Under the pieces are notes generated by a model. It was not told the origin of the DNA, searched no databases, and was given only the letters and a program-made list of their open reading frames with translations. 64,000 bases of DNA, taken from NCBI GenBank assembly GCA_964247055.1, contig OZ176055.1, positions 2,232,001-2,296,000 on the forward strand, written 5' to 3'. The translations under genes were made by a program, and so were the position numbers. Below are positions 30,574 through 62,334 of this stretch, piece after piece. Every line of letters starts with the position of its first letter. The stretch's first letter is position 1. This DNA comes from Paragordius varius. Taxonomy: Eukaryota > Animalia > Nematomorpha.

Positions 30574-33500
30574 CAGTATGCATTTTAATGTATGTTAAGT
30601 AATTTTATTGCCTGCCAAATAACATAAATGGTTTATCAAAAGCGTAAAATACTGACCCACGAAATTATTTCGTAGTACACATATGAAAGAAGATTGACGT
30701 GAGAATTAACATAGGCTTTAATTTGATGGATATTTTGTAATGTTAAATTTTGAGAATATTATAGCAATTTATGTTAACATTTGTAATATTGTTGTTACGT
30801 ATTTAGATGCGGAATTTTGTGGGTTTTTATCTTTGATAAATTAATAAATAGTAAAATACGTATTTTAAGATATTTTATGTTAATTATTCTTATTAATAAT
30901 AAATATTTTTCAACATGCTAAATACCTGTATTAATCAATATTAGTATTATAATTTTATATACGTGTTATTACTAATAACACAGGTAAATATATATTTGTG
31001 AAAATTTAAATAGATTTTAGATTTTTGACTTTTATGTTTTGCATTATTTTTATCAGGTAAAAATTGCGGTTTTTAATAAATTTCCTAAAAATTTAGTTTT
31101 TTATGTTTTTTAGGTTTTGCATTGTTAGTTGTAAATAATTACTACATATTTTGGACATTATAATAAATAGAGGTAAAAATTGCGGTTTTTAATATATTTC
31201 CTAAAAATTTATTTTATGTTTTTTAGGTTTTGCATTGTTAGTTGTAAATAATTACTACATATTTTGGACATTATAATAAATAGAGGTAAAAATTGCGGTT
31301 TTTAACAAATTTAGTAAAAATTTAGTTTTTTTTGTTTTTTAGGTTTTGCATTGTTAATTGTAATTAATTACTACATATTTTGGACATTATAATAAATACA
31401 GGTAAAAATTGTGGTTTTTAATAAATTTAGTAAAAATTTAACATTTTTGTGTTTTGTATCATTGTTATTTGTTATTAATTAAAATATTTTGAAAATTTTA
31501 ATAAATACAGGTGAAAATTGCGGTTTTTAATAAAAGTAAAAATTTAACATTTTTGTGTTTTGTATCATTGTTATTTGTTATTAATTAATAGATATTTTGT
31601 AAATTTTAATAAATACAGGTGAAAATGGCGGTTTTTAATAACGAGTAAAATTTCTAATTTTTTGTTCAACGTTGCTAATTTATTAAATATATTTTTTTAA
31701 ATTTTTAAGAAAATGATTTTTTTTGTTTTACATTGATAACCAATATATTAAATATAGTTAACATATTCCAGCATACAGGTAAAAATGGATGTTACGGTTT
31801 TAGGTTTGACATTTTAATTTCAAATCCAACCATGTATATTTTAACAAACACCTTATGTCACCAAAGATTGAAAATAAGATCAAGATATATAAAACATCTT
31901 GTAAAGTATCTGAATATCGCCAAATATAAATAAATTTATTTAAATTATAAATGTGTAATTATAAAAATATTCATAATATTATGTTTGAAATTAGCTTCTT
32001 CTTATTGATATTAATACAGGTAATTCGTTTCTAATATTGATAAACGATGAGTGTGTGTTCATGATAATCATAGCCAAAAATTAAATGTAGATAATCCTGA
32101 AAATTTCAATCACCATCATTTTCTGGGTATATTCTATCAACTAAAATATAAGATAGAAAGGTATTTTTAATATATTAGAAAATTGATACCTGGATTATAT
32201 AAGTATTTTTAACATAATTTTAAATATTGAGGGCTAAACATTCAATTAAAAGGGAACTAAATAAGGTTGACGTGGCTTTTTAACAACCAAATTTTCAAAA
32301 AAATATTTTCTTCATGATAAAAAATTCTAAAATAATATTTTTGTTTTTGCGTTTTTGTTCTATCATCCTAAACTATAATGAAAAACTATTCTTCACCAAA
32401 GCAAACAATGTTAGTGTTGCCTGCTTAGTTTTGGAAGTGCTGTTGCATTAGCTTTTGAAAAAAAAATTTTTTCTATTTTCTATTTGACGTCATTGTTTCA
32501 TATTTATAGTTTGGGATGGTAGAACGAAATATCATTTTTGAATTTTTTATCATGAAGAAAATATTTTTTTGCAAATTTAGTTGTTAAAAAGCCAAGTCAA
32601 CCTTATTTTGTTCCCTTTCAAACTTTGAATGTTTTAGCCCTCAATATTTAAAATTATGTTGAAAATACTTATATAATCCAGGTATCAATTTTCTAATATA
32701 TTAAAAATACCTTTCTATCTTATATTTTAGTTGATAGAATACACCCAGAAAATGATGGTGATTGAAATTTTCAGGATTATCTACATTTAATTTTTGGCTA
32801 TGAATATAATGAACGCACACCGCATCGTTTATCAATATTAGAAACGAATTACCTGTATTAATATCAATAAGAAGAAGCTAATTTCAAACATAATATTATG
32901 AATATTTTTATAATTACACATTTATAATTTAAATAAATTTATTTATATTTGGCGATATTCAGATACTTTACAAGATGTTTTATATATCTTGATCTTATTT
33001 TCAATCTTTGGTGACATAAGTTGTTTGTTAAAATATACATAGTTGGATTTGAAATTAAAATGTCAAACCTAAAACCATAACATCCATTTTTACCTTGCTG
33101 GAATATGTTAACTATATTTAATATATTGGTTATCAATGTAAAACAAAAAAAATTTAAAAAACCGCAAATCATAGTAATTTTTACCTGTATATATCAATGT
33201 ATCAAAAATATATTTAATAAATTAGCAACGTTGAACAAAAAAATAGAAATTTCATTCGTTATTAAAAACCGCCATTTTCACCTGTATTTATTAAAATTTC
33301 CAAAATATTTTAATTAACAACAAATAACATGATACAAAACACAAAAATGTTAAATTTTTACTAAATTTATTAAAAATCACAATTTTTACCTGTATTTATT
33401 ATAATGTCCAAAATATGTAGTAATTAATTACAATTAACAATGCAAAACCTAAAAAACAAAAAAAACTAAATTTTTACTAAATTTGTTAAAAACCGCAATT

Positions 33501-34335
33501 TTTACCTCTATTTATTATAATGTCCAAAATTTGTAGTAATTATTTACAACTAACAATGCAAAACCTAAAAAAACAAAAAAAAACTAAATTTTTAGTAAAT
33601 TTATTAAAAACCGCAATTTTTACCTCTATTTATTATAATGTCCAAAATATACAGTAATTATTTACAACTAACAATGCAAAACCTAAAAAAACAAAAAACT
33701 AAATTTTTAGTAAAAATTTATTAAAAACCGCAATTTTTACCTCTATTTATTATAATGTCAATATGTAGTAATTATTTACAACTAACAATGCAAAACCTAA
33801 AAAACATAAAAAACTAAATTTTTAGGAAATTTATTAAAAACCGCAATTTTTACCTGATAAAAATAATGCAAAACATAAAAGTCAAAAATCTAAAATCTAT
33901 TTAAATTTTCACAAATATATATTTACCTGTGTTATTAGTAATAACACGTATATAAAATTATAATACTAATATTGATTAATACAGGTATTTAGCATGTTGA
34001 AAAATATTTATTATTAATAAGAATAATTAACATAAAATATCTTAATATACGTATTTTACTATTTATTAATTTATCAAAGATAAAAACCCACAAAATTCCG
34101 CATCTAAATACGTAACAACAATATTACAAATGTTAACATAAATTGCTATAATATTCTCAAAATTTAACATTACAAAATATCCATCAAATTATAAAGCCTA
34201 TGTTAATTCTCACGTCAATCTTCTTTCATATGTGTACTACGAAATAATTTCGTGGGTCAGTATTTTACGCTTTTGATAAACCATTTATGTTATTTGGCAG
34301 GCAATAAAATTACTTAACATACATTAAAATGCATA

Positions 34336-34338
<3 letters not shown>
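30574..34338. mobile_element. 3.8 kb foldback element (family E) with arms of about 1.8 kb and internal 108-116 bp tandem arrays
   Basis: CAGTATGCATTTTAATG at 30574 and its reverse complement ending at 34338. Arms 30574-~32385 and ~32495-34338 are near-mirror images around a spacer of about 110 bp. Both ends abut (TA)n. The terminal sequence is shared with family F MITEs. Confidence 0.9.

Positions 34339-34373
<35 letters not shown>
34339..34373. repeat. (TA)n microsatellite
   Basis: Direct observation; abuts the right end of element E. Confidence 0.95.
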
Positions 34374-34376
<3 letters not shown>

Positions 34377-34619
34377 TTCCTCTCTCTTTTTTACGTAAGA
34401 TGTTTCAAAATCAAAGGGGCTATTTTGAATTGATTTTTTTAAAGATTTTAGTCTAAATTATATATGTTTAATGATAATTTTAAATTATTGATTGCATATT
34501 AAGATTTTAGTTTGTGTGACTCAGACTGTCAACAGCATAATCTTATGCATTTCCACTTTTTGAAAAATTATATGTAAATTAAAAAATTTAGTTGGATTTT
34601 GTATTTATAATCAACTATA

Positions 34620-34625
34620 TTTATT
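34620..34625 (-). promoter_or_regulatory. Candidate polyadenylation signal AATAAA of the microexon gene
   Basis: AATAAA on the minus strand about 30 nt downstream of the predicted stop at 34654. Weak on its own in AT-rich DNA. Confidence 0.4.
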
Positions 34626-34653
34626 ATGATTTAATAAGTAATAATTACAAGGA

Positions 34654-37024
34654 TTATATATTTGTTTTTGACATATCTGACGACAAATAATTTAATTCAC
34701 GATAGGCATCCAGAATCTATATAAAATATATATTATAAAATATATATCAATAAAAGAGAACCAAGTAATCTGTTTTCCAGAAATAACATACCGATTCCTC
34801 AGCATCTAGGATAAATAAAAAATTGTATTAAAATTTTTTTTTTACTTTATGCAACAAATGTTTTTTTTCGGGCCGGCTTAACACAATGTTGAACTTTATT
34901 TATAAAATAGCTAAAATAATTGTTTCGATTCTAAAAAGATGCACCATATTTCCTGTTTGGTCAGAATCAAAAAATTGTGCTTTTATGTCATAGGGGGGGA
35001 TGTTTATATATATTGGTAATTAAACAAAAACATCTTTATTTAATACTAAAAAATATATGGAAAATTTCAAATTAATACATAACTTTTTACATCAAAGTTA
35101 AAGGACATAAAATGTGTTAGATGTCAATTTTTATCGCAAAAATATCGAGATTTCTCGACAAATTTACAAATATTTACCTAACCATATTATAACTAACCAT
35201 AGAAGCCTGTACTTTATGTTTTTAATATAGTTTTTAATTAGATGCAGTAGAGTAAATTAAAGTGCTTTTCTCGAGTATACATTTATTTAGGTTGGCCTAT
35301 ATATAAAATAACTCAAGATGCCAATTAGGCTTTATATTATATTTTAATATTTATACCATTCAGTCAAAAGGAAATCTTTTTTACGCAATTTTTTTTTCAA
35401 CCGAACGTAACATTTTAACGGTGTTAAAAACGGGTTGCTTAATGGTATATATAAAAAATTATTCTGCTACAGAAATAGTAGGGTTTACTCAAAGTCGACA
35501 GATACAATTTTTCTGTAGTGCATTTTATAGGAAAAATGTTTTATATACCATTTGCACTTCAAGGTCCTTAAACACTTCAAGTTGGTTCCTGAACACTTCA
35601 AGTTGGCCCTTGATCATTTAAACTCGGTCCTTTGACTTTTTTTGTTTTGTTTTGATTTTATCAATCAAATCTTATATCATTCATCTATCATATCGTTTTT
35701 AACCTATTTTCAGTAAATTAACATAAAACTTACATCAATATCAACTTTTAATCATTAAACCATATATCTTTATTATTTCTTGAAATTATTTTAGATATTT
35801 ATAAATTTTTAACACGTGAAAAAATAAGTTTTTTGGCTTATTATTTAAAATTTTCAACTAAAAACATCTAGAGTCATTAATTTTGTTAAATTGGAAAATA
35901 TAGTTTGAGACAAAAATGTGTTTTTTGAATAAAAATTTATCTTTTTAAATGAATAAATATATAATAAATAAAGAAAATTAGGTTAAATAATAAAAAATAA
36001 ACATGCAAAAATTATGGTTAAATCAAATTAAAAAATTTTAACGACAAACTTGAAGTAAGGACCAATTTGAAAAGTTCAAGGACCTAAAAGTGTTCAAGGA
36101 CACTCTTAGAGTGAATGGTATATTATTAAAAGAGTAAACATGTTAAAAATAAAGTTTAAAAATATGTGTTTTTAAAATATATTAAAAATGATATTGGTAT
36201 TCATGCATATTGTTAGATGTAGAGAGATTATTTTGTCAAGAAATCTCAATATTTTTCTAAAAGCGTTAATACATATTTTGCCTCTCCTCAACAATTTTGA
36301 GGTCCAATGCAAAAAATGTTAGAGTTAATATGTTTTGCTACAATTCCATATATTTTATTGTAACACCCATAGATAATTTTTATTCCGTGAATAATATTTT
36401 ACACCATTTAATGTTGCAGGAAAAAGGTGATTCTCACCAAATGTGGATATATGGCGATATTTTTTAAGATTAAAAAAAATTATACATCAACAGGTATAAG
36501 CTGGTCATAAAATTTAAAAATCATTTATAAATACTGCTATAAACTAAACTTACCAGCCAATTCCTCTTCAATGGCGCCTGACATATTTTAATAAAAATTT
36601 ATTAATATTTTTATTGAGAATTTATGTAATAATATAGTATGCATTTTAATGGTTGCCTCACACTATAGTAAAGCAATTTGCAAAATAAGAGTTTACGAAA
36701 AAAAGAAGGGAAATTTTTATTTAACACTTGGATACAACACATTCATTTTAGTCCTTCGATTCAAATTGGGGTAGTTAAATACCCCCTGTTGAAAATTTAG
36801 TCTGTGGTATTTAGATACCCCAAAAATCAAAGTGTTAATATTTTGATTGCTTTACATTGTTGCTTGTGAAAAAGCAACCATTAAATTGCATATTGTAATT
36901 AAATGACATATTTCCAAAATTACATTGTGTAAAATTGTTTTTAAAATGGCAGTAGTCAAAAAAATTTCACGCCAAATGGATTTTTAAAAAAACTAGTATG
37001 GTTACCTCCCTCTCCTTCAGCTAT

Positions 37025-37060
<36 letters not shown>

Positions 37061-38439
37061 TGCATTACATAATAAAAAAATCTTTTTATCAAAAAACCAT
37101 TTTAACAAATTAAAAAATATTTCTTATCGAGATAATATAAGTTCTATCCCTTAAGATGCTATAATTAATTAATTAATATGTTAAAGTTTTATGAATAATT
37201 TATAATTCTATTAGTGAGGATTAAATGGGTATTATTTGATAAAAATTAAAAAAATTAAATTCATAAATATAAACGTAATTTACCAATTCCCTGTATGACA
37301 TCTAAAAATGCACAATAAATAATATTTATATATTTAAAATTTGTAAATTTCAAAAAAAAAATTTCGCTAACCCTATTTGTAAAAAACAATTTATTTAAAA
37401 GCAATGTACATTTAACAGGATAAAATAGACTAAACTTAAAATGGAGTTTCATAATTATTACTAAAAAAAGTTAAACTAGTCTATGTTTATTTCATATTTT
37501 AAGTTGAATTTATTTTATAAATTATTATTATACTTAAACACAATTTGTCATTTATTAAGGCAGTTTTTACAATAGTCGTAGATTAAAATAGAAGATATAA
37601 GGAGACTTCGATTCGACAATCCAAAAACTAAGTTGTTAAAATTAAATTTGCTATTTTGCTCATGTTTTAATAATGTGTACAATTTTTCTTTGCGGGAGCA
37701 AATTAAATTAATGTTTCTTTTGATGAGGTAAAGTTTGAATTAGCATATATATAAAGGAAAACTAAGTTGCTACGCCAGTCATCAGTTATATGTGATCAAG
37801 TTAATCAAATGTTATAAGTACTGGGTGCATGTAATTTACAATATTAAATTTTATTGAAAAAATTGATGGTATTGTTAGACTCGTGCTACTCGTTCATTAT
37901 TTGTTGCAAGATAGATAGCAGACAACAATGAGCATTATAGAGTCATGTATCCTTTATTTAAAAAAAATTTTTTTCGTTAAATGGGAAATATCTGGTAAAT
38001 AATGGAAAAAACAAGAGCTTTATGGTAATTATTAACTTTTTTGATGAATATGATATTGTTAATACCATAGAGCTCTTGATTTTTCCATTCTTTAACAAAT
38101 TTTTATACCCAATTTACGAAAGGAAATAAATTTTTGATAAAATAAAGGATACATGACTGTAAAAGGGTTAATAGTTATTATATTCGCTTTTTACTGCTAA
38201 TATTTTGTCTGCTTATGTTATTTGGCAATACAAATAAGCAAATGTATATTTACTAATACTGTAATAGTGATCCCCTATGATGAATCAATTATATTTATAT
38301 ATCGGATTTGAACCCATAAATCTTAAGTGAAGGGAATGATAAAAAGATAAATGTTTATACCTTGAATATTGATGGCTAAAATATTTGTTAAATATAAATA
38401 ATAATACCTCCTCCGATCTCTAGAGCCACAGAAATATAT

Positions 38440-38513
<74 letters not shown>

Positions 38514-41500
38514 ATTTCCCAGTCAAATAAAAGTGTCCCTAGTCAATCGAAACGTTTTCCGAATCAATCGAAACGTTTTCCCAGTCAACCGAAACATTTT
38601 CCCAGTCAATAAAAACATTTTCCCAGTCAATAAAAACGTTTTCCCAGTCAATACGGTTTTATTTTTGATGATAAATATCAAAACAAGAATATAAAAACAA
38701 CTTTTAACCATTATCAGCGTAATATATGGAGATAATTTTTTATTAAAAACACAATTATTAAATGACAATTTTTCTAATTATATTCCAGTGTACAATCATT
38801 AATGACTTATTCTTTAAAAGTTATATTTTTGGAATTTGAGTTAAGATATTTTTTATTTTATCGATGGTTCGCATTAATATTTGCGGAACGCTTCACAACA
38901 GTTTATAAATATGTCAGGTTCGTCGATAAAAATACTGTTGGAAAAAACAACTAAACGAAAATTATTTTGATAAATGTTTTTGATTTAAAAATATTTAATA
39001 AAAAGGATATTTGACTAATACAAGGGTGTCCAACTAAATACCCTCGCGGGCCGCATTTTTAATTCAAAAAGCACACGGTTCCCCATTCAAAATATATACG
39101 GGCATTCACCTAATTTTTCGATTAATAAGATTATAAAATACAAACACAATATAACAATTTTTTTAATTCATTAGCAATTTAAAATCTTCATTCATAATAA
39201 TTGCGTAAGAAATACAAATATTACTAAAATTTTGTGGGCATATTTTTGCATATGGTTTTCCAAATTTTTTGCGGCCCGCGCAAAGATACTCGGAAGGCCG
39301 CCTTAGGCCCCCAACCAAATGTTAAATAGTATAAAATTTATGTTTAAGATCCAATATAAAGTGTTAAATGACCTTTGTGAGGTATATTTTTATAAATTTT
39401 ATTATTTCCTCCGTAACTATAGATTTTTTAAGTTAGCCGCAAATATTAATGCGAACCATCGATAAAATAAAAAATATTATCTTAACTCCAATTCCAAAAA
39501 TATAACTTTTAAAGAATAAGTCATTAATGATTGTGCACTGGAATATACCTGGAAAAATTGTCATTCAATAATTGCGTTTTTAATTAAAAATTATCTCCAT
39601 ATATTACACTTATAATGGTTAAAAGTTGTTTTATATTCTTGTTTTGATATTTATCATCAAAAATAAAAACCTTTTTATTGACTGGGAAAACGTTTGGTTG
39701 ACTGGGAAAATGTTTCGGTTGACTGGGAAAACGTTTATTTAGACTGGGAAATGGTCTATATATATACATGTACACGTATCGAATAAAGATATATACCATA
39801 AATATATGTCTCAAATTTACCCTTAAATACTTCAAATTACCCTCGATTTCAAATTCTTCCTTAACATTCATCCACGCTTAAAAATAAAATTTTTGCTATT
39901 GTTTTTTTTTTGAAAATAAGATTTTAAAATAATACATTCAAAAATAAGATATTTCGAACAGATGTGTCCAATACAAATATTTTTGCAAATTGATTTTTTT
40001 GGTTTTATTATTATTTTGGATGATATCTTTTAAATAATCGTAAATATTTAATTAAACAATTTTTTATTTTAACATTCCATAGCATTTTTGCGTACCGAAT
40101 AAAGCGTGTTGGACATCGCTGTTTATATTATAAATAATTATAACTCTTTCAGTCAAAAGTAACATTTTTAACAAACGCAACTTCAAGCAAAAAGACAAAA
40201 TGTTTTTGCTTAAAAATATATTGCGTTTGGTTATAAAGTATAGCTTTTAACTGAAAAATAGTATAGTTATTAACTCAAAAACACATTTTTTGGATTAATT
40301 CAAAATGTTTAAAATTAAATTAAAAATATTTTGATAATTTTTGAAATGTTTAGGGGTTTAAAGGTGTTTTTGGAATAATTTTTAAGTGTAAATGGTATAA
40401 TACGAACAAATTTACCATCATCGATTGCCCCTAAATGGGAATATATAATTTATATAGGTAAAAATACAATAAAGTATTAGTGAGTTTTACCAACTCAAGG
40501 TCGACATTTTATCGCCAATTTTTTTATTATTAAAAATCGAAATAGGACAAATTTAAAATTGAGTCAATCAAAGGAGTTAAACTAAAATAGGAAAAAAATT
40601 TATCTTGAAAAAACGAATGAGTTTTATATAAATTTTATTAATGTACGCGAAACGATCTGTTAAGCAACTGTTTTATCTAGATTCACCTTAAAAAAGAAAA
40701 TATATTAAGTTAATAATAATATAAGATAATAATTTTTTGGTAATATATATAAATTTTATCTGTAATTTATCCACTACCCATATTTCATTAATAGAATCAT
40801 TAAAAAGTTGAATAAAGAAGACATTTCATACCTGGAATATTTTCATCTATTTAAAGACAAAAAATTAAAATTATGAATTTATTAAATCCTATAGTTCCAA
40901 TTAATTCTCAATTAAAAGATTTTAGGATATTTGAATTAATCAAACATATAGCGCTTGGCACCAATACAAAAAAAATTTCCAACACTGGCACATGTGAATC
41001 ACTTTTTGCATCAAAAAGCTACACAAATCCTTTAAAATTTCTAGGTTATGTGTTTTTTTGAAAATGATTCTCGAAAATAGACTGAAGCATGATAGTTTTG
41101 TTAGTATGCTCTTTTTTAAAAATATTTTCTTAATTGCATTTGGTGTGTGCTTGCTCAAAAGGGACTTTACTGTACCCAAAATTAATCAATTTAAATTTTA
41201 TTGACAAAATCAACTATTATTAACAGTTTAAAAATATATAATAAGTTTTAGCTGTAAAATATAATCTCATTAACTTGAATTTTTAAGGACTTGTTCCATG
41301 TTGACAACTATATATATGTATATATATATATATATATGTACATTAGGGAATTATTGTGCTTAATTAAACATTACAAACCTTCTTCACCAGTTGTCTCCGC
41401 CGCTTCTATTATTGATTGATTAAATTAAAACCAAACCTTCCAGGCCTAAATATATATAAATATATATTGGGGTAAAATTAATTTTTAATGTTATAGAGTG

Positions 41501-44500
41501 CATAGAAGTCCTACATCTTTTAAAAGATTAACTAAAGCGATAATTAAAACGACAAATTAAATTTAATAAAATTTATATACCATATATATTATGTAAACAG
41601 GATTGGGTAAAATTTTCAATATATTTTATTGTTCTTTGGTACCCGTAGGTTAACAATTTTAAGCCAAAATATTTAAATTAGCCTAATATAAAAAGGGGAT
41701 TTTATGTACAAATTTTAATCGTTATATAATCTAATAACACGTTTGAGAGCAGTGCCTTTAACCTCTAAAAATTGCCAAGAAATTATTTTTACCCTCTTAT
41801 TAACACGGATACATATGGTTTGTGTCCAAATTCGTTACCTTAAAAATCCAATCCGGATATAATGTTAGTTTCGTAAAAATATAATGAACAAAAACCTAAC
41901 ACTTGTATAAAAGATATTAATTTTCCCCTAAAATATGTGTAATTTACTTTCGATGATTGTTGAAGGCTCAGAAATATCAGGATTTACGGTGGGGGTATGA
42001 TATTCAACTAAAATTAGGTTTTTTTATACTGTAAGGTGGTTCATAAGGGAATGGATTACCTAAATCCATAAAAAAATTAGTTTCTCTCCCATTAATAATT
42101 AATTGTGATAGAAATAAAATCAAACGTATAGTTTTTATAGCAGAATCTGTGCTTAAATAATTTATTGTGTAGTAACGTGAGCATGTGCGTTATTCTATCT
42201 ATACAGTACTATTCTACAAACTGAGTTTGTGATTAATTTTAATATCAAGACATTATATGATCAAATTTCCTTAAATATAAAGGGACTCAGTGTTTTATAT
42301 AAGCCAAAAGACATTTAAGCCGGCTAATTCATCGAGAGACTTGAAGGGTTTAGCAAATGATCTAAATCCGTGGTGTTAAAGTCGTGGCCCTAAAAGTGCT
42401 TTTTATAGCCCTGAGTTATTAGTTTAATATTTTGACGTATACTTATTTTGGGTAAAATTATATGCAAATGTGTCAAGCAGCTAAAAATATTATTTGCGGC
42501 CCATTGGTGAGTACAGTGATCTTAACTCAGCATTTTTATCAGATCCATTAAATAAATGTTATATGCAATACACTTATAATTACAGTATTAGTAAGTATGC
42601 ATTGCTAGAAAGTTATCAATTATTGCCAAATAGCTTATACAACAAAGAGTAGTATTATTGTCTTATTGTTATTTTTTCCCTTTTTACTATTAAAAGCCAA
42701 TAATAATTCTGTTTGCTGTAAATGTTATTTAGCACTAATTAAAAACTTTCTAGCAAAATATAGTTACGCATACTGTAATACAATTTTTAGTTTTATACAT
42801 ACGATCAACTTAATATAAACAGAACAACACATTAACACTGTGGGCAAAAAAGAGGGTCATTTTGATTTAACTAAAAAATTTTTTCTCATGAGATTATAAC
42901 CAGCGTATACATTTGCTGCAAAAATTTATATTTGTTGACAACCTAGTTTTTGAATTATAGAGAGAAAATCGAAATCGGGAAAAAAGTGAAAATTAAGGAT
43001 AATTCAAAAAATAATAAAATTTGAAATATTATGGTTTATTATTTTAGGAAATATTTTCAAATATATTTCTAAAATCATATAGTTAGGGTTTCTATATATT
43101 TTCAGCTCAAAAGATGGCGTTTTTCTTTTAATACACTTAAAAGACAAAAAAATTATATTAAAATAATTTTTCTATTTACTAGCTTAACTCACTATTAAAA
43201 TCTTAACATCCATATTTTATCCAGTAAAAAAACTTGTATATAAAAATAAAACCAAAATATTGTTTTTTATTTTTACATTTTTTTGGCATCTGGTTTGTGA
43301 GTGAGTGTATAAAATTATAGTTTTATTTTAATATATCTTACATGAGTGCAAACTATGTATAGAATTTATGAAAAATAAGAATTTAAATTAGTGGAATATC
43401 AACCAATCCGTACAAATTCTATTCAAATATTAATTTGCATAGAACAGACTTGTTACAGTTTAAAGATTGTTGGTTGATATTCCAAATCCTTTTTTGCATA
43501 AATTATATACTTAATAATTGCCACTCATGTAAAAATCCTAAATAAAACAGTATATTTTTATACACTCACAAACCAGATGACAAAAAAATGCAAAAATAAA
43601 AAACAATATTGGTTTTATTTTAATACATAAGTTTTACTGAATAAAAATGATGGTTAGGTAGTTTTTAATAGTGAGTTTAGGTAGTTAACAATTCAGAAAA
43701 ATACTATTATTTTTTTATTTTTTAGTTTGATAAAAGAAAAACGCCATCTTTTGAGCTCATATTTTATACAAACCCTATATATTTGATTTTAACTATTTAT
43801 GTATTGAAAATATCTCCTAAAATGATAATAAACGATAATATTTCAAATTTTATCATTATTCTTGAATCATTAATTTTCCTTAATTTCCTTTTTTGCCCGA
43901 TTTCAATTTTCTCTCAATATTTCAAAAACTAGGTTGTTAATAAATAAAACATTTTGCGGCAAATTAATCGCTGGTTATAAGCTATCTCATCAAAAAATTT
44001 TTGTTAAATTTTTTGCACACAGTGTAATAATCAAACAACACAAAGGCAATAATGAAATGCATTCGTTGTGGTTACGTAATCATACATGGAAATTATTACA
44101 CGAAAATATTTTTTATATATGATTTAACAAATTGACATATGTAAGAAAACAACTCAAAGTCACTTATTAAGTATGGTGTAACCCAGAGGTGTCCAACACG
44201 CTACGCGGCCCTTAAAATTATATCGGCAGCCCTCCGCAAGCATTAAAATACCACATCACAAAATTTTATCATTGAAAAATGAATTTTTATAATTTTTAGT
44301 AAAAATGTGAATAATTGTTTTATTGAGTACAGTCTTAGTTTGAAATGTAATAAAATTGTTGATGTACATAAATAGAGTGTGGCATGTGAGATTTTCAAGG
44401 TGAAAATAAGCTTATTAAGTTATTTTTGTTGGACACCCCTAATAATTATCATGGATAAAAAAAACATCGGATAGGTGTAATTGCATAAAAATTAATTGGG

Positions 44501-45313
44501 ACTTACTCCGATCTATAATAAGGGTATAATGTAGATAAGGGAATAAATAATTCTAACTTACGTGTTGATCGTAGTTTATCAAAGATAATGACTAATAAGA
44601 GATGGGAATATTATTAAATGTATGTAAATTGGTTAATTTTGTGCTAATTTGTGATAGATAAAATTTAACTGACTATAAATATATATTTTAAATTAAGTTT
44701 TATAATATTCTATAGATTTATCAATAAGGTTTAAATTTTTACTGGTTATCATAAACCATTACAAAGATAAAAATAAGCAACTGTTAAAACATTTCTTTAA
44801 CACATAAAATTTATCATAATCGCTAACAACACTATAAAAAATTTTAATGACTATATGTTTAAGTATTATTCTTTTTTATACAAGAAGTTAGTTTATGTCA
44901 GTCAACCAAAACAGTTTAAAAAAATATTTATTGTTTTTTTAATATAAGGAGGGACTAGCGTTTTAATTTAAGATATTAATAAATACCCAATGAAGGTGCT
45001 GTAAAATTAATTTAATCATATATATATTTATATATAAATTGAAATTTACGGACAAAACGTATAAAAACAAATTTTTATTTTAAAAGATAACCATACTTTT
45101 ATAACCCCTAATTTATCCTATAAAAATGATTTAATTACATTTGTAAAATTTATTGATTGTTACCAATATATATGTCATTTCATTGACAGTTTTAAACAGT
45201 TAGTTATATTTAAAAAAACAAGATATAAATATTATAATCTTTTGAAAAAAATTGTCTTTATTTGTTTTGTCCGTATATTTTTAATTGTATATATATATAA
45301 TTTTAATTTTTAC

Positions 45314-45357
<44 letters not shown>

Positions 45358-48300
45358 AATGTTTTACCTGAGTCAACTTTAAACCAAAATATTGTAAATT
45401 TGGAATTTTGTATATAAAAAATATAATTAGAATATTAACATACTTTCACCTATAATAAATAAAATTTATCAATTAAATATTGATACGTTTTGTCCTCGTT
45501 GGTGGCACGCTTCCATCCAACTTTTTATTGTCTTCTTAAAAAAATAAATAGAAACTAACAATGTTTTGTCTAAATTAATGATAAATTTCATTATTTCAAA
45601 GATTATATTTTATCAATGTTGTCATTAAAACAAAAGTCTAATAATTATATAACCTTTATTTTTTATAGCCATTTGCACCATGTGATAAAAATCTTCTGCC
45701 TGGCCTATAAGTAATAATATTAATAAAAATAATAGCAGGAAAATAATTTTAGAATGAGTGATACTTACCAGAACCACCAAATATTGTTGCTACATCATAA
45801 ATATCCATATAAAAAATAATTTTGTAAAATCGCCCCTATAAATATCAACCTCCTAGGAAGTTTTTGCCTTCATATAATAGTTATCTCATTTTGATAATCA
45901 TGCATTTTTCTGACATTTAATAAAGTAAAAGCAATCATAAAATTGTTTATCGACTGCTAGGCTTCAAATTCTGGCACTCCAGGCATTTAGTGTAAAAGAC
46001 CGGCGCCTTCCCTATTATTTTTAGGACTGAAATAAACATATATGGGGATGTATCAGAAAAACTTTCAAACTTTTATTATCACGGATTTTATTTCATAACT
46101 ATTAATTTTAAATTTGCAATATATTTTTTGACTCACAATTTACCTAATATTATATATATATATATATATATATAACAGTGGCCATATCATTTGTTAACTC
46201 GGTCTTTTTTTCCTATTAACGATTTAAGATATACAGCAGGGGTGGCCAACGAGGTGACCGCGGTCACTTTCGTGACCGCGACAACTCAAAAAGTGACCGC
46301 CTGAAAATATTTTTTTTTAAAAAATTTTATTGATTTTTTTCGGATAGTTGGCTACTTCTGAGCGAATTTAAATTTAAAATACAAAAAAATACGGTTTAAA
46401 TTAAATAAAACGTCTAAGAAAAGGGTGTAAAAAAATTATTTTATTAATTATAATTCATATGTTTTGGAGCATTTGCATTAAAACTTAAAATCAGTCATTT
46501 CCCTTGAATATATCAAAACTTTGAGCAAAGCTTATTCATAAATCAGAAGCATAATCGTGAAGTTAGATTTGATTTGATACACCAAAAGTAGGTTTTTAAA
46601 ACTTATATTTTAGAATGAGCCAAAAAAAGTTGTACAGATACAAGAAAGATTGGGAGCATGAATACTTTTTTATTATGATAAATGAAACATGCACCTGTCT
46701 AATATGTAATAGTACTGTTGCTTTGCCCAAAAAGTCAAATATTGAAAGACATTATAGATCTCTGCATCCACATTACTCCAAAAACTACCCCTTACAAACT
46801 CAAGAACGCAACATTAAAGTAAAGGAATTAAAAGAACAATTATCCGCCTCACAAAATAGCATACTTAAATACAACAAAGACTATAAAAATGCTACGATTG
46901 CTTCATTCAAGGTAGCGGAAATACTCATTCAGAACAATAAGCCATTCCAAGATGGTGAAATATTTAAAGAAGCCTTTATTAGCGCTTGTGATATTTTATT
47001 TGAAATAATATTATGACAGCTATTAAAAGCATAAGCTTATCGAGAAATACCGTTATGCGCAGGGCTGATTATGAAATTTTACATGAAAATATTAATAACT
47101 GTATTTTTTTTCCTTGCAACTCGATGAGTCCACCGATTATGTTGGAATCGCCCAATTATGCATTTTTATTCGTATGATATTTAGTGATTTATCTGCAAAG
47201 GAGGAATTATTAACTATAATACCTCTCCACGAACGAACCAGAGGGCAGGATATTTTTGATTCTTTTTATAAATTTATCACAGATACGAAACTTCCCATCG
47301 TAAAACTCGCATCTATAACTACTGATGGAGCTCCAGCTATGATTGGCGTTAACAACGGCTTTATCGCTTTATGTAAAAATCACAGTGCATTTCCCAAGTT
47401 CATTGATTACCATTGTATAATCCATAATCAAGTTTCATGTTCAAAAGTTTTAAAATACCATCATGTAATGAACCCCTGTTTTAAAATTGTTAACGCCATT
47501 CGAACAAAAAGCTTGTCCCGCCACCAATTTCGAATTTTGTTAAATGAGTGCGGCGTGGAATATGGAGAACTTTTATTACATACTGATGTAAGGTGGTTGA
47601 GTCGTGCCGCATTTTTAATTAGATTTAGGCAACTTTTACCACAAATAGAAATTTTTTTAGAGAATTCTAAATTTTCATACCCTGAATTGAAAGATCAAGA
47701 TTGGCTGCTTGATCTTGCATTTTTATGCGATATCACGGAAAAATTGCATAAATTAAACATCCAATTACAAGGAAAAGATAAAACAATAATGGATATGATG
47801 GGTGCTTTAAAATCTTTTAAGGAAACACTAACAGTAGTAGAAACACAATTAAAAAACCGAGATTTAAAACATTTTTTTAATCTGGCAGCGGTGTCTGAAA
47901 AAATAGAGAATCTCTCTTTTGAAAAATATGCAGATGATATTGGTCATTTTGAAAAACGATTTTCATCTATAAATAAACTTGAAGACATCGCTATTTTTTT
48001 ATCATGCCCATTTAATAATAATAATAATGTTGAATATATTGCTCAAAAACTCAGCCACTTTCTTGGTGTACCAAATTTAGCAGAGTTGGAAGAGGAATTA
48101 ATAAATGTTAAATGCGATATCCATCTAAAATCATTAGGATCAGATATATATAAATTTATAAATAAAGATAAATACCCCCATATTTGGAAAACCGCTGCAT
48201 TATTCAATTCTTTTTTTGGATCCACATATTTATGTGAATCGGCTTTTTCAATTATGAATGCTATCAAAACTAAACAGAGGTCACAATTAACTAATAAACA

Positions 48301-50142
48301 TTTAGAATCATGTTTGAGAATTGCTTTGACTTCATTTGAACCTAATTTAGATAAACTTTCTGAATTTTTTCGCAGTCGGGCGTTTTAAATATTTTTTTCT
48401 TTATTAAATATGGATTTTTATCGAGTTGTATTTTCGCTTAGGAAAAGGCCGATTTACTAAAAAATATGTGGATAGAATTAAAACTGATACAATTTTAATG
48501 TACTCTTATTTATGTTCAAATTATGGTTCTAAATTGGAATGCTATTTTTTATTTCTTTTATTTTTTGTATCATAATGTATTCTCCCCTGTAATTTCAAAT
48601 GCATTGTTAAATTTTTATATTGTAAAATTTGATATAATAGAAATTTAATAAATAAATATTTTGAAGTGTTTTATGTTGGTTAAAAAATTAAGGTAGTTAA
48701 TAACCCGTTGTCTTTTAATTAAAATTATTTTTGTATTTGGTTGATAGATAAAAAAATTACAATTTTAAAATGGTTTAAACAAGTCACTCTAATCTGTAAA
48801 GCAGGTATATACATCATTTAAAGTGTTGATTGAGTTTTTTTGATAAATATTTCTGGGTGACCGCGAACTCTTTTTTTTAACAAAAAAGCCAAAAAAAAGC
48901 TCGCGACAAAAAAAGTTTGGCCACCCCTGATATACAGTATGCATAATAGTTGCTTATTTACTACGGTTGGGCAAATTGTTACATTTGTGTATGAAAAAAA
49001 GAAAGGAAAAAATTTTTTATTAACATTTTTTTTTCAATACACTCTTGTGTTGATAATTAACCAACTATAGTGTGAAATAAGCAACCATTAAAATACTGTA
49101 ATTAATAGATTTGTTAAACAATTTTCATAACATACATACATGTATAAGACACTTTAAAGTATTTGGTTATATTCTGTTTGCGTTTGTAAATATTCATTTG
49201 CATAGTAGTGGAATCTATTGAAAGATACATCATATGAGTAATTGTTAATTAAACATATCTTTTCATGATTATACTGTAGGGCTGAGGGATAATAGCTTTG
49301 TCAATTATAGCATAATTTTTAGTTCTAAGTTGTTTCTTCAATTCAGATATTTCCATATCTGAAAAAATAAATAAATAATATCAATTTGTATTTAGACATA
49401 AATAATATGTATGTGCATTAGATTTTAGTTTAAGCAAATTATCAATATGATATTTTCAGTAATGAAAAATATTAAACTACGTGGTAAAAAATCAAAAAAT
49501 AAAGTTTAATGAAATATATATCATTCAATAGCTGAAATCATGATAATGAATATAGATTGGATATTTGCATTTAAAATACCAGAAAAAAAGTTATTTGAAT
49601 ATTTCTATTATTAGCCAAAATCAAAAAATCACATTTTTAATGCATATTAGTCAAATTAAATTAAATATAAGAGATGAAATAGTGTCGACTAAATTTTATT
49701 AATTCTAAACGCAAAATATTATCAAAAATTTTGATTACAAGGTAAAAAATCGCACTTTGGCGTCAAATTAGGATTCACAAAATTTATCAATAGGTAATAT
49801 AAAATTTGAATTTATAATCTAATATATATTACCCAATATATTGCCTTAAAAGTCTTAAGCCTTATGTAAAAAAAAATTTTCGATTTGCACCAAAGCGGAA
49901 GCTGCCTATAACTTTTACAAAACATCCCTCATATATACTAAAATTTTTTCCATACAATTCGATGCAGAAAAAAGGATCTATCATCTGAAATTTTTGATTA
50001 AGGGAATTGTTTTACCTGAAAATCTTGATTATATATTTTTTGGCGCCATTTTTGCTTTTATACTGGCCTTAGTGCATAAACCCTAATCAATAATTTAGAT
50101 GATAGATCTTTTTTCAGATCGAATTGTATGGAAAAAAGTATT

Positions 50143-58762: not shown

Positions 58763-61218
58763 CGTTTGATTCAAAATCGGTTTTGTTTTCTGTTGTGTTT
58801 TTTTATCGATCACAATGGCTAAATATTTAGTGGTGCTATTATGAAACTTTGGTGTTTCAAAATTAATTTTCCAACCTTGGTGTGTTAGGGTCGTTGTAAT
58901 ATCTGTCAGATGCAAACAAAAACAAATGTTGACTCTAATTAAACATTATATTGTCATATAGATGAGTTAATAGTAGAAATTATAAAGAGAATAATTCTTT
59001 GCTCCAACTTTAAAGTATTACTTTTTGGGTTTTATATCTTTGACGATTTAAAACTTGAAAAAATTTTTTGCCGCTAACTTCGTATGATTTTTTTAATAAT
59101 GAAATATATATTATGGTTAAACAATGTAAATAATAAATGCTCTCAGGGAACATATTATTAGCAGAAACCTGATATATTTTTATTATATATCAGCTTGTAT
59201 TTTGGAACTATACCAATTTGACGCTAGGAGTTTTAAAACTGTAAAAAGTATAAATTTTATAATTTATGAAAACGATGTTTGATAATTAAATTTTAACCAA
59301 AATATCTTTCAAAACTGTAGTTTATTTACAAAATTGAGTAGGGTATAAATCTACCCTATATCTAGGATAAAATCAGATAGATATGAAATCGTTAGCCAAT
59401 GTGCTCCTTGCTATAACGTGCAATCTAACTTAATATAAAATTAGCGTATAGCTCCATTAATTTTTTGATGTGTTTTAGTAGTAAAAGACGTTAATATTGC
59501 ACGATTGAAAAAATTACATTATTAATATTAAAAATAATAAAACTTTATTCCAAGATGCCATAAAATTTGGATACGCTTAAACTACATATTTTTGAGTTAG
59601 GGTTGTTATGCTACCAAAACATTAAAATGTTCAATGGGTTTTTAGTAAAAAGGTATAAAAAACACCAAATTTTGTTTTGTCAAATTTATTACAACAGTTA
59701 TGAAACCTATCGTTAAAATATTTCTGACCTGAGAAATTAAGCCAACATAAAAATAATACCAACCCTCCTATACTATTAGGAAATATACATAGATTGTAAC
59801 CCCTTTATAACAAATATATAATAGTAGCGTAAATCTCGTGCTGCTACGCAGCCCGAGGAAGTCTTTCGGACTTCTGGGGGGGTTTCGAAGTTTGGATTTG
59901 AATGGGTCTACCGGTTTTCCGGTACCAGATCACAAAGTTACATGAGGAATTAGTTTTTTAGCGGGTAGCTCCTTACCCAGCAGCTATCATTAAAGAAACG
60001 CCTGACTAAAATTTTTGCCTTTTAACAGGCAATACGAAAAATCCTTATCGAATTTTTAGAGTCTCATACCTTGGGCAAGAAAATAGAATCAAAAAATTAT
60101 TTTTGTGGACTTTGTTTTTTTTTGAAAAAAATGGTATTTTACGGGGGTAGCGGGTAAAAAGAGGGCCTAAATCAAAAAAGTGAGTCGACTATGTTCAGCG
60201 CGATCAAAAATAAGTAAACAAAAATTATATTTGAAATTGAATAGTCCAACACGTTCTCCAAAAAATTGACTTAACCCATTTTTAACACGGGGTAGGCCCG
60301 AACTGGGGACCTAATTCCAAAAAAGGGCGAAGCTATTGTCGGGACATTCATTAATGATTATATTTTTTCGATATTTGGATTTGATTGGGTTCACCGGTTT
60401 TCCGGAAACAGATCACAAAGTTACATGAAGAATCATTTTTTGCGGGTAGCTACTTACCCAGCAGCTATCATCAAAGAAACGCCTGACTAAATTTTTTGCC
60501 TTTTAACAGGGAATACGTGGAATTCATATTGAATTTTTTACGGTCTCATACCTAGGGCGAAAAATAGATTTAAAAAATTATTTTTGTGGACTTTGTTTTT
60601 TGAAAAAATGGCATTTTACGGGGAGAGCGGGTAAAAAGAGGGCCTAAATCAAAAAAGTGACTCGACTATGTTCGGCGCAATCGAAAATAAGTAAACAAAA
60701 ATCATATTTGAAATAGAATGGACCAACACGTTCTCCAGATTGTCTCAAAGACACGATTTTTGAATACCTCTGTTTTCAAAAAAAACCCGTTTTTCACACG
60801 TGGGCCCGAACTGGGGGCCTATTTCAAAAAAAGGGCGAAGCTATTGTCGGGGCATTCATTAATGATTATATTTTTTCAAAGTTTGGATTTTAATGGGTCT
60901 ACCGGTTTTCCTGTACCAGATCACAAAGCCAGCATTTTCCATTTTTATAAATATATAGATTAAATTATATTAAATTTCAATTAACATCAAATTCTATATA
61001 ATTAACAATATTGTACAAGTAATTTAAATAAAATGGATAAAAAGCTTATTTTTTGAGTTACTATAGAGCCTTCTCAACATGTATTAAGATGTATGATTTT
61101 AATTTTGGATAGGGCCTTATTTAAAAATAGTGGTAATCTACTCTATATGGCTAAACTTTACACACGAGGGAGGGCTAGTGTAAATGCAAAATGTTTTTGA
61201 TATTAATCAGCCATAGTA

Positions 61219-61251
<33 letters not shown>

Positions 61252-62334
61252 TATTTCGAATAACTTTATTAAATTTTGTGTAAAAATACAAGATTTGTAG
61301 TTAAGATTAATATTTATAAAGATATAATATTAAAACACTTACTAAAGCTCTCAAATGGCGCTATAATATAAATAAAATTAATACCTTAACGAAAAATAAA
61401 TGGAGTATTTTTTATTTTACCAAATTTCAGAAATCCTGTAGCTGTAAAATCTTTTCCAGGAGTATGAAGAGTTATGTTAATTTCATAGGACCCCGATCTT
61501 GGAAATTGGACAGTAAATATATTCTGGAAAATAATCAAGAATATGTAGCATATTGTGTCTCATTATAAAATATAATAAATTAGCAAATTAAAAAAGAAAT
61601 GCAACTATATATATTTATGATTGATTTTGAAGTCGGAATCGCTGGTCATAAAATTTATGTTGTTTTTATCAATACACAACATATGTTTATAAAATTTAAA
61701 TTTTAACGTTTTACAGTTTCAATACAAAAGTCAAAATTTAAATAAATGAAATCTAGCATCCGTAGTAAATTTCATGGGACTGAAATTTCATATGGGTTGA
61801 AGGAAACTTTAAAAATTGAGGTAGACACAGTAGAACAACTGGCAGGGGGAAAGAGTCCAGTTAAAAACAATTTATTATTTTTGAGCAGCAAATTTAATAG
61901 GATAAATATTAATTTTTAAGTATCTCTAACGGTATGCATTACTAACACCAAAATTTACTCAAATCATAGCGTTTTACATAATATAAAATTAACATACTTT
62001 TTTAAGAGTTTGGCTGGCAATCATATTTTGACTCTCATCCTGGAAGATGTAAGATATTGCCGTAATCACAGGTAATGTAGTGTTAACTAAAAAATCACGT
62101 TCAAGACCCCGACCATACACTATGAGTCCTATTTCAACATTTTCTGCAAGCAGTGATATATATTTTCATGTGTATTTTTTTCAAAACAAATTTAGCTATA
62201 TATGAAAACTTTATAATAAAAATGAAAATTTCGCTTTTTTTTATATTATATACAGCGTGCTAATACTAACCGAGGCTTTTGGATAGATATCCATTCAGGA
62301 ACAATAGGCAAGAAAGAATAGTAATTGATGGCAT
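58763..62334 (-). CDS. Putative secreted glycoprotein (beta-rich, possibly PKD/Ig-like N-terminal domain) with short symmetric exons; 3' end not found
   Basis: Exons 62334-62271, 62143-61998, 61523-61421, 61360-61343, 58902-58876 and 58789-58763 join in frame with GT-AG ends: MPSITILSCLLFLNGYLSKSL-ENVEIGLIVYGRGLERDFLVNTTLPVITAISYIFQDESQNMIASQTLKKNIFTVQFPRSGSYEINITLHTPGKDFTATGFLKFAPFESFNITTTLTHQENKTDFESN. Signal-peptide-like start and four N-X-T sequons. Confidence 0.68.
59824..60959 (-). mobile_element. Non-autonomous Helitron-like element with internal 480-510 bp tandem repeats
   Basis: Minus strand: A|TCTATATATTTATAAAAATGG 5' end at 60959. 3' hairpin CTCGgGCTGC-GTA-GCAGCaCGAG, then ATTTACG-CTAC|T at 59824. 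Inserted between A and T with no TSD. About 2.1 tandem units start near 59884, 60366 and 60876. Confidence 0.78.

Follow-up and report, generated by a model that had tools for sequence, protein, structure and literature searches.

The stretch analyzed here, a window of 64,000 nucleotides (nt) from contig OZ176055.1 (positions 2,232,001 to 2,296,000 of the forward strand; assembly GCA_964247055.1, labeled Paragordius varius), is strongly AT-rich, with 21 to 35% GC in 2-kb bins, and is clearly animal nuclear DNA. Its minus strand carries a series of tiny exons that probably belong to a real protein-coding gene. Judged from the sequence, the last 13 to 14 exons of this gene (from 42069 or 42059 to 34654, referred to here as the core) would almost all be micro-exons of 9 to 60 nt, and the product would be a small, very acidic, non-secreted protein of about 120 to 146 amino acids (aa). 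A preliminary description of the same DNA had proposed a gene of about 20 consecutive micro-exons. The open, strongly coding-like frame that it had described, assembled from tiny symmetric phase-1 exons, ending in an acidic tail and resembling schistosome micro-exon genes in architecture, is borne out by our analysis. Eleven of the proposed micro-exons are supported, whereas seven are at chance level and one (38274) is doubtful; for the 48-nt exon at 45534-45487, the acceptor and the coding character look real and the internal donor does not.

Read from the ATG at 42069, the model comprises 14 exons with 363 coding nt, which translate into 120 aa. Very short exons hold 260 of these 363 nt; among the internal exons, 11 measure 36 nt or less and one measures 60 nt, and the commonest size is 15 nt. 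The 12 internal exons open at the second codon base (phase 1), and each is a multiple of three. The exon that begins at 42059 or 42069, upstream of the 60-nt exon, was overlooked in the preliminary description, which had placed the 14-nt exon, the stop-containing exon, and the AATAAA at the other end of the gene just as we find them. The core model thus closes, with an in-frame ATG or an acceptor at its 5′ end and with a stop codon and AATAAA at its 3′ end. Introns range from 22 to 1,748 nt; three of them are only 22, 31, and 32 nt long (42008-42029, 41406-41436, and 38376-38407) and stand beside others of 263 to 1,748 nt. Each of the three short introns has a CTAAT- or TTAAC-like branch motif 10 to 16 nt before the AG, and their removal is required because read-through yields stop codons. 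Three exons share a (G)-A-I motif at their starts, which suggests internal exon duplication.

The coding character of the core was judged against a multi-exon SIK/MARK-like kinase gene that lies elsewhere in the window, on the minus strand (~21535 to ~2854), and has at least seven clear introns in its kinase domain and long N/Q-rich low-complexity exons. Codon log-odds were trained on 1,773 codons from the open reading frames (ORFs) of this gene against the trinucleotide frequencies of the non-coding DNA of the window, and its seven certain introns (donors GTATAT, GTAAGC, GTATTG, GTATAA, GTATTT, GTGATT, and GTTTAG, with G at −1 in five of the seven) served as the local splice-site reference, the typical donor being GTA(T/A). 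A blind dynamic-programming search then covered both strands and all phases for the highest-scoring chain of symmetric AG...GT exons, combining the codon log-odds with three splice features and charging a penalty of 6 bits per exon. Within 34654-42100, the best result was a phase-1 chain on the minus strand that scored 23.0 bits over eight exons, all of which are on the list of the preliminary description or adjacent to it. Control chains scored 0 on the plus strand and no more than 6.2 bits in the other phases or in any of 300 Markov simulations. Outside known coding DNA, the core was the top-scoring of 228 sliding strand-and-phase windows, exceeded only by windows in the kinase gene, and its 7.4 kb contain 12 loci of at least 4.5 bits, compared with about 0.3 per kb per strand-phase in the controls. 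A cruder island count (15 versus 5) and a listing of GC islands proved too unspecific and were superseded by these scored tests.

The preliminary description had admittedly favored candidates divisible by three, and this selection bias was controlled by a matched null of 20,000 samples, in which AG-3n-GT islands of the same lengths, open in phase 1, were drawn in the way that the original candidates had been drawn. The summed codon score of 12 core exons was 49.8 bits against −16.2 ± 10.1 in this null (z = 6.6), a value reached by none of the 20,000 samples. The signal is also specific to the frame: the 49.8 bits in phase 1 compare with 6.1 and 0.4 in the other two frames, or with 11.5 and 25.0 when stop codons are ignored. 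The spliced coding sequence scored 65.4 bits in frame versus −7.1 and −9.9 out of frame, and its GC content by codon position was 0.56/0.35/0.33. Splice features that had not been stated as criteria when the candidates were chosen accompany this signal. G occupies donor position −1 in 10 of 11 core exons, against a background of 0.21, and a pyrimidine occupies acceptor position −3 in 10 of the 11 (background, 0.51); upstream of the core exons, the T content is 0.52 versus 0.37 and G is depleted. A occupies donor position +3 in 9 of the 11. The donors look like those in the kinase gene, and the core exons lie outside all repeats mapped in the window.

These regularities are consistent with a simple scheme for how such exons could be recognized and why they share a phase. 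A micro-exon would be defined by strong sites, namely a YAG acceptor after a T-rich tract and a G|GTA donor, together with a purine-rich body. The G preferred at donor position −1 would at the same time be the first base of a GNN codon (D, E, G, A, or V), so that the codon is split after its first base. The junction codons are GNN in 10 of 12 cases, and GNN codons make up 45% of all codons; the uniform exon phase would follow from this GNN richness combined with the donor preference for G at −1. Every junction codon begins with G or A, so skipping any exon would leave the frame intact and introduce no stop codon. Combinatorial isoforms, or a tail of variable length, are thus possible in principle.

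Table 1. Exons and associated features of the micro-exon gene and of the region above it (window coordinates)
Feature	Coordinates	Strand	Observations
A1, 67 nt, possible start ATG 45808 (MDIYDVATIFGGS)	45769..45835	-	Donor CTG|GTAAGT, phase 1 at its end; splice sites good; codon score only modest, in top 13% of open windows
A2, 51 nt, phase 1-1	45654..45704	-	Raw score 4.3; codon score in top 11%
A3, ends in in-frame stop (...RTKRINI*)	45472..45534	-	Codon score in top 1.3%; internal donor 45487 weak, C|GTATCA, no G at −1
Proposed exons of 6, 9, 12, 18, 30, 6, and 21 nt	45449-45444, 45376-45368, 44998-44987, 44850-44833 or 44780-44763, 44591-44562, 44512-44507, 42361-42341	-	Unsupported
40-nt first coding exon from in-frame ATG (MDLGNPFPYEPPY) or 30-nt internal exon from acceptor 42059	42030..42069	-	Codon score in top 0.3%; first half of weak E2-like motif
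22-nt GT-AG intron	42008..42029	-	CTAAT ten bases before AG; stop codon if retained
60-nt phase-1 exon	41948..42007	-	Best single exon: 11.9 bits in phase 1 vs −4.4 and −3.0 in other frames
9-nt exon, possible, individually unprovable	41437..41445	-	67% GC, YAG acceptor, G at −1, but donor GTT; followed by 31-nt intron
27-nt phase-1 exon	41379..41405	-	8.0 bits
15-nt phase-1 exon	40832..40846	-	Blind chain search and locus scoring
15-nt phase-1 exon (G-A-I-D-D)	40416..40430	-	Blind chain search and locus scoring
36-nt phase-1 exon	39841..39876	-	Acceptor AAG; raw score 4.8
12-nt phase-1 exon	38408..38419	-	5 nt from 1.3-kb foldback transposon; followed by 32-nt intron
15-nt phase-1 exon (A-I-N-I-Q)	38361..38375	-	Raw score 5.0
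Second 15-nt exon proposed in that interval, doubtful	38260..38274	-	A at donor −1; 0.6 bits
18-nt phase-1 exon	37284..37301	-	Raw score 4.6
15-nt phase-1 exon	37006..37020	-	Raw score 11.3
24-nt phase-1 exon (G-A-I-E-E-E-L-A)	36554..36577	-	Raw score 9.1; donor CTG|GTAAGT
14-nt exon, frame shift from phase 1 to phase 0	34792..34805	-	Codon score in top 1.1%; acceptor tract 75% pyrimidine; donor TCG|GTATGT
Terminal coding exon, 20 codons and TAA	34654..34716	-	Weak codon score, top 19%
AATAAA	34620..34625	-	29 nt past stop codon

The islands between 45449 and 42341 are a different matter. Minus-strand islands of the proposed lengths do exist, preceded by AG, followed by GT, and open in phase 1, with several equally poor candidates each for the 18- and 21-nt exons. 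Their codon score is 1.8 against a matched null of −4.9 ± 5.7 (P = 0.13), high-scoring loci in this part occur at the background density of one per 3.4 kb, and the blind search returned a chain of a single exon worth 0.6 bits. G stands at donor −1 in two of the seven islands. The island at 44998-44987 is the only one that scores well by itself (6.6), and one such island is the chance expectation. The upper exons of 6, 9, 12, 18, 30, 6, and 21 nt are at background level and are chance matches. The claim that the islands avoid transposons holds for the core, and fails for several of the possible 18- and 21-nt picks, which lie in the arms of foldback elements or of miniature inverted-repeat transposable elements (MITEs) (42579-42779 and 44183-44200).

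Foldback elements, that is, long inverted repeats, also fill the long introns (38487-39779, 42911-43964, 42579-42779, and 37935-38164). The largest of them contains tandem 21-nt TTTTCCCAGTCAA(T/C)... units, which recur on both strands at 52 to 58 kb and create long spurious ORFs of WENVSID or FPSQSK repeats.

The product predicted from ATG 42069 contains 32 aspartate and glutamate residues versus 3 lysine and arginine residues, has an isoelectric point of 4.05, lacks cysteine, and falls on the disordered side in a charge-hydropathy analysis. The preliminary description had inferred a secreted or host-facing protein, and we find no support for this. Neither possible start is followed by a hydrophobic signal core, the longest hydrophobic run in the first 30 residues being three residues from the start at 45808 (MDIYDV...) and one from the start at 42069 (MDLGNPF...), and a search upstream to 53000 for a signal-peptide exon or for an exon encoding an E2 N-terminal helix returned only transposon or satellite ORFs. 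Since the protein is very acidic, cysteine-free, predicted to be disordered, and without a signal peptide, we read it as intracellular.

Profile and structure searches give a faint hint of what its N-terminal part may be. Residues 1 to 31 of the 42069 model match positions 51 to 81 of the Pfam UQ_con profile (PF00179) with 14.3 bits and an E-value of 0.031, below the gathering cut-off of 27 bits and equivalent to about 0.1 once corrected for four Pfam queries; the score falls to 12.9 bits when the A exons (A1 to A3 in Table 1) are added. All eight weak PDB matches (E = 0.3 to 1.3) are ubiquitin-conjugating (E2) enzymes, with NPFPYEPPYIEYHTPTVNPDI aligned to their YPxxPP...HPN region. These alignments run ungapped across the junction of the 22-nt intron, with FPYEPP...TP..NPDI set against E2-C and E2-T, and one of them extends into the A exons. 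The position of the HPN triad reads NPD, and the position of the catalytic cysteine is Ile. The tail alone gave only noise in Pfam and PDB (Rifin, E = 0.48; DUF7553, E = 0.5), the A ORF had no Pfam match, and the A exons alone had no PDB match. Possible likenesses to complexin and to PP1 inhibitor-2 were considered and dropped, as Pfam returned no such matches.

Several points weigh against a real gene at the core. Of the words sampled from 40300-45900 and from the terminal exon, a fraction of 0.00 occurred in RNA runs of the same species label; the runs that matched were all DNA. Neither the 87-aa tail nor the 87-aa N-terminal joined piece had a homologue among the proteins of 48 to 152 aa in a collection of 5.8 billion. 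The terminal exon, in the top 19% by codon score, and the 9-nt exon are weak individually; A3 holds an in-frame stop, and small upstream ATGs precede 42069. The scoring features, moreover, were picked after the region had been read, and were applied uniformly to both strands and to the controls. One alternative is that there is no gene at all and that the islands are chance AG...GT matches in AT-rich DNA. In its favor are the admitted choice of multiples of three, the lack of an RNA match and of a homologue, and the fact that about 60% of short exons would be open by chance. We nevertheless regard this as very unlikely, because the strand-, phase-, and frame-specific signals hold under both the blind search and the matched controls. 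A reading that is compatible with a real micro-exon gene, and that we hold only tentatively as a somewhat unlikely possibility, is that the protein is a degenerate, catalytically dead relative of the E2/UBC fold whose C-terminal part has turned into the acidic micro-exon tail. The UQ_con match, the uniform E2 identity of the PDB matches, and their continuity over the intron junction all point in this direction, but the match remains below the cut-off with a modest corrected E-value, it weakens when the A exons are joined, the A exons and the tail yield nothing by themselves, and the active-site residues are replaced.

Several arrangements are conceivable for the 5′ end of the gene. The three A exons (45835-45472) have good splice sites and only modest codon scores. 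A3 may be an exon used alternatively or last in a transcript, or else it may close a separate ORF of 50 aa. A direct splice from A1 and A2 to acceptor 42059 would give a product of 146 aa and strikes us as an even call; this acceptor has a good sequence, and its phase fits both A donors. An arrangement of two genes, in which a three-exon 50-aa ORF (45808-45472, ending RINI*) precedes a micro-exon gene with its own ATG at 42069, seems rather unlikely. An independent start at 42069 is favored by the in-frame ATG, whose exon has a high codon score, and by a TATA-like sequence, GGGCTATAAAAAGC, at about 42412-42399; in addition, A3 combines the best codon score of the A exons with a stop, and Pfam and PDB show nothing E2-like in the A exons alone. 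It is disfavored because a transcript from the TATA-like box would carry several upstream ATGs, one of them 22 nt before 42069, and the quality of acceptor 42059, as well as the weakness of a homologue-less 50-aa ORF as a gene, also argues against two genes. The full model of the preliminary description, with about 20 micro-exons forming one gene from 45534 to 34654 that includes the upper islands and encodes a secreted or host-facing protein diversified by skipping, is extremely improbable in our judgment. All of its islands exist and are open in phase 1, those at 44998-44987 and 45376-45368 have decent splice sites, and skipping would be allowed; but the upper islands have background density and score, the required donor at 45487 is poor, some picks lie in foldback or MITE arms, the product has neither a signal peptide nor cysteine, and the roughly 50 aa inserted would part the A exons from the region of the FPYEPP motif.

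The core gene, probably real as set out above, has other features around its 5′ end. The DNA around the minus-strand GGGCTATAAAAAGC is locally richer in GC, with CCAAT about 100 nt upstream of this TATA-like sequence and the proposed 21-nt exon just downstream; the sequence could be a TATA-box promoter, with ATG 42069 some 340 nt further on. About 400 nt upstream of A1, an isolated GC-rich palindromic island (46235-46300, minus strand; GCGGTCAC...GTGACCGCGGTCACC) stands in AT-rich DNA and may represent one end of a transposon or a regulatory element. A hAT-type transposon on the plus strand (46615-48388) separates the micro-exon gene from the DNA further upstream and has two ORFs, one of 133 aa with a Spin-doc/BED-like zinc finger (PF18658, E = 1.7e-10) and one of 424 aa with a hAT dimerization region (PF05699, E = 1.8e-4). 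Farther away, an isolated open stretch of 58 codons (61992-62165, minus strand) has moderate GC, is coding-like, has no Pfam match, and may be an exon of another gene; the remainder of 58763-62334 is largely made up of GC-rich islands that derive from transposons. Within 33000-47000, neither Rfam nor a tRNA scan returned a match.

The architecture of the locus invites comparison with several known systems. Schistosome micro-exon genes (MEGs) have very short 3n exons of 6 to 81 bp, most commonly of 15 nt, between long introns, and are hard for annotators to find (PMC10526429). Their products are secreted and vary through exon skipping. The locus is like them in that coding sequence lies mostly in very short 3n exons with 15 nt as the commonest size, introns are much longer, annotation is difficult, and frame-neutral skipping is allowed. 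It differs in that its product has no N-terminal signal peptide, no hydrophobic FL..F..W motif, no sequence similarity to MEG products, and no Pfam family; unlike the "sticky" Schistosoma MEG products, it is acidic and hydrophilic, three of the introns are only 22 to 32 nt long, and the organism is apparently not a flatworm. Aphid bicycle genes have many small internal exons that all start at codon position 2 (PMC9168663), and the locus likewise has many small internal exons in that one shared phase. Bicycle proteins, however, carry a signal peptide and paired CYC motifs, whereas the locus product has neither, contains no cysteine, and shows no sequence similarity to them. Symmetric phase 1-1 exons are also known to encode disordered segments (PMC3632108), and both the phase symmetry and the predicted disorder are found here; unlike typical modules of this kind, the exons of the locus are far shorter and more numerous, with no evidence of shuffling between genes. 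Given that the signal-peptide and motif hallmarks of both MEGs and bicycle genes are absent, the structure works like that of these genes without being a member of either group.

Some E2 enzymes, of the CDC34/UBE2R and UBE2G types, have acidic tails or loops. The locus product shares with them a motif that resembles YPxxPP, is spaced much as in E2 enzymes, and stands ahead of a very acidic C-terminal region. It departs from E2 enzymes in several respects: the match falls short of the threshold, the product lacks both the HPN triad and the catalytic cysteine, no C-terminal helices can be detected, and an exon for the N-terminal helix was not found.

What is known of micro-exon genes comes mainly from secreted effectors in flukes, tapeworms, and aphids, and a literature search found no description of such genes in horsehair worms. 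One broader reading, which we consider unlikely, is that the gene belongs to a micro-exon architecture that evolved independently and extends across the genome in a third animal lineage, possibly a horsehair worm. Such exons would then not be restricted to secreted effectors, and here, with introns down to 22 nt, they would form the acidic tail of a protein that is intracellular and perhaps derived from an E2 enzyme. The value of a single locus is limited until RNA confirms the splicing. Were the genome-wide reading true, micro-exon genes could arise from a general regime of intron gain and splice-site choice acting on GNN-rich coding sequence and not from selection for antigenic variation, and exon skipping would yield a tail of tunable length. 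If a micro-exon gene for a non-secreted, acidic product became well supported in a further animal lineage, the architecture would be seen to reach beyond "parasite variation systems," the more so given introns of 22 to 32 nt, and standard gene finders would be seen to miss a class of genes in such genomes.

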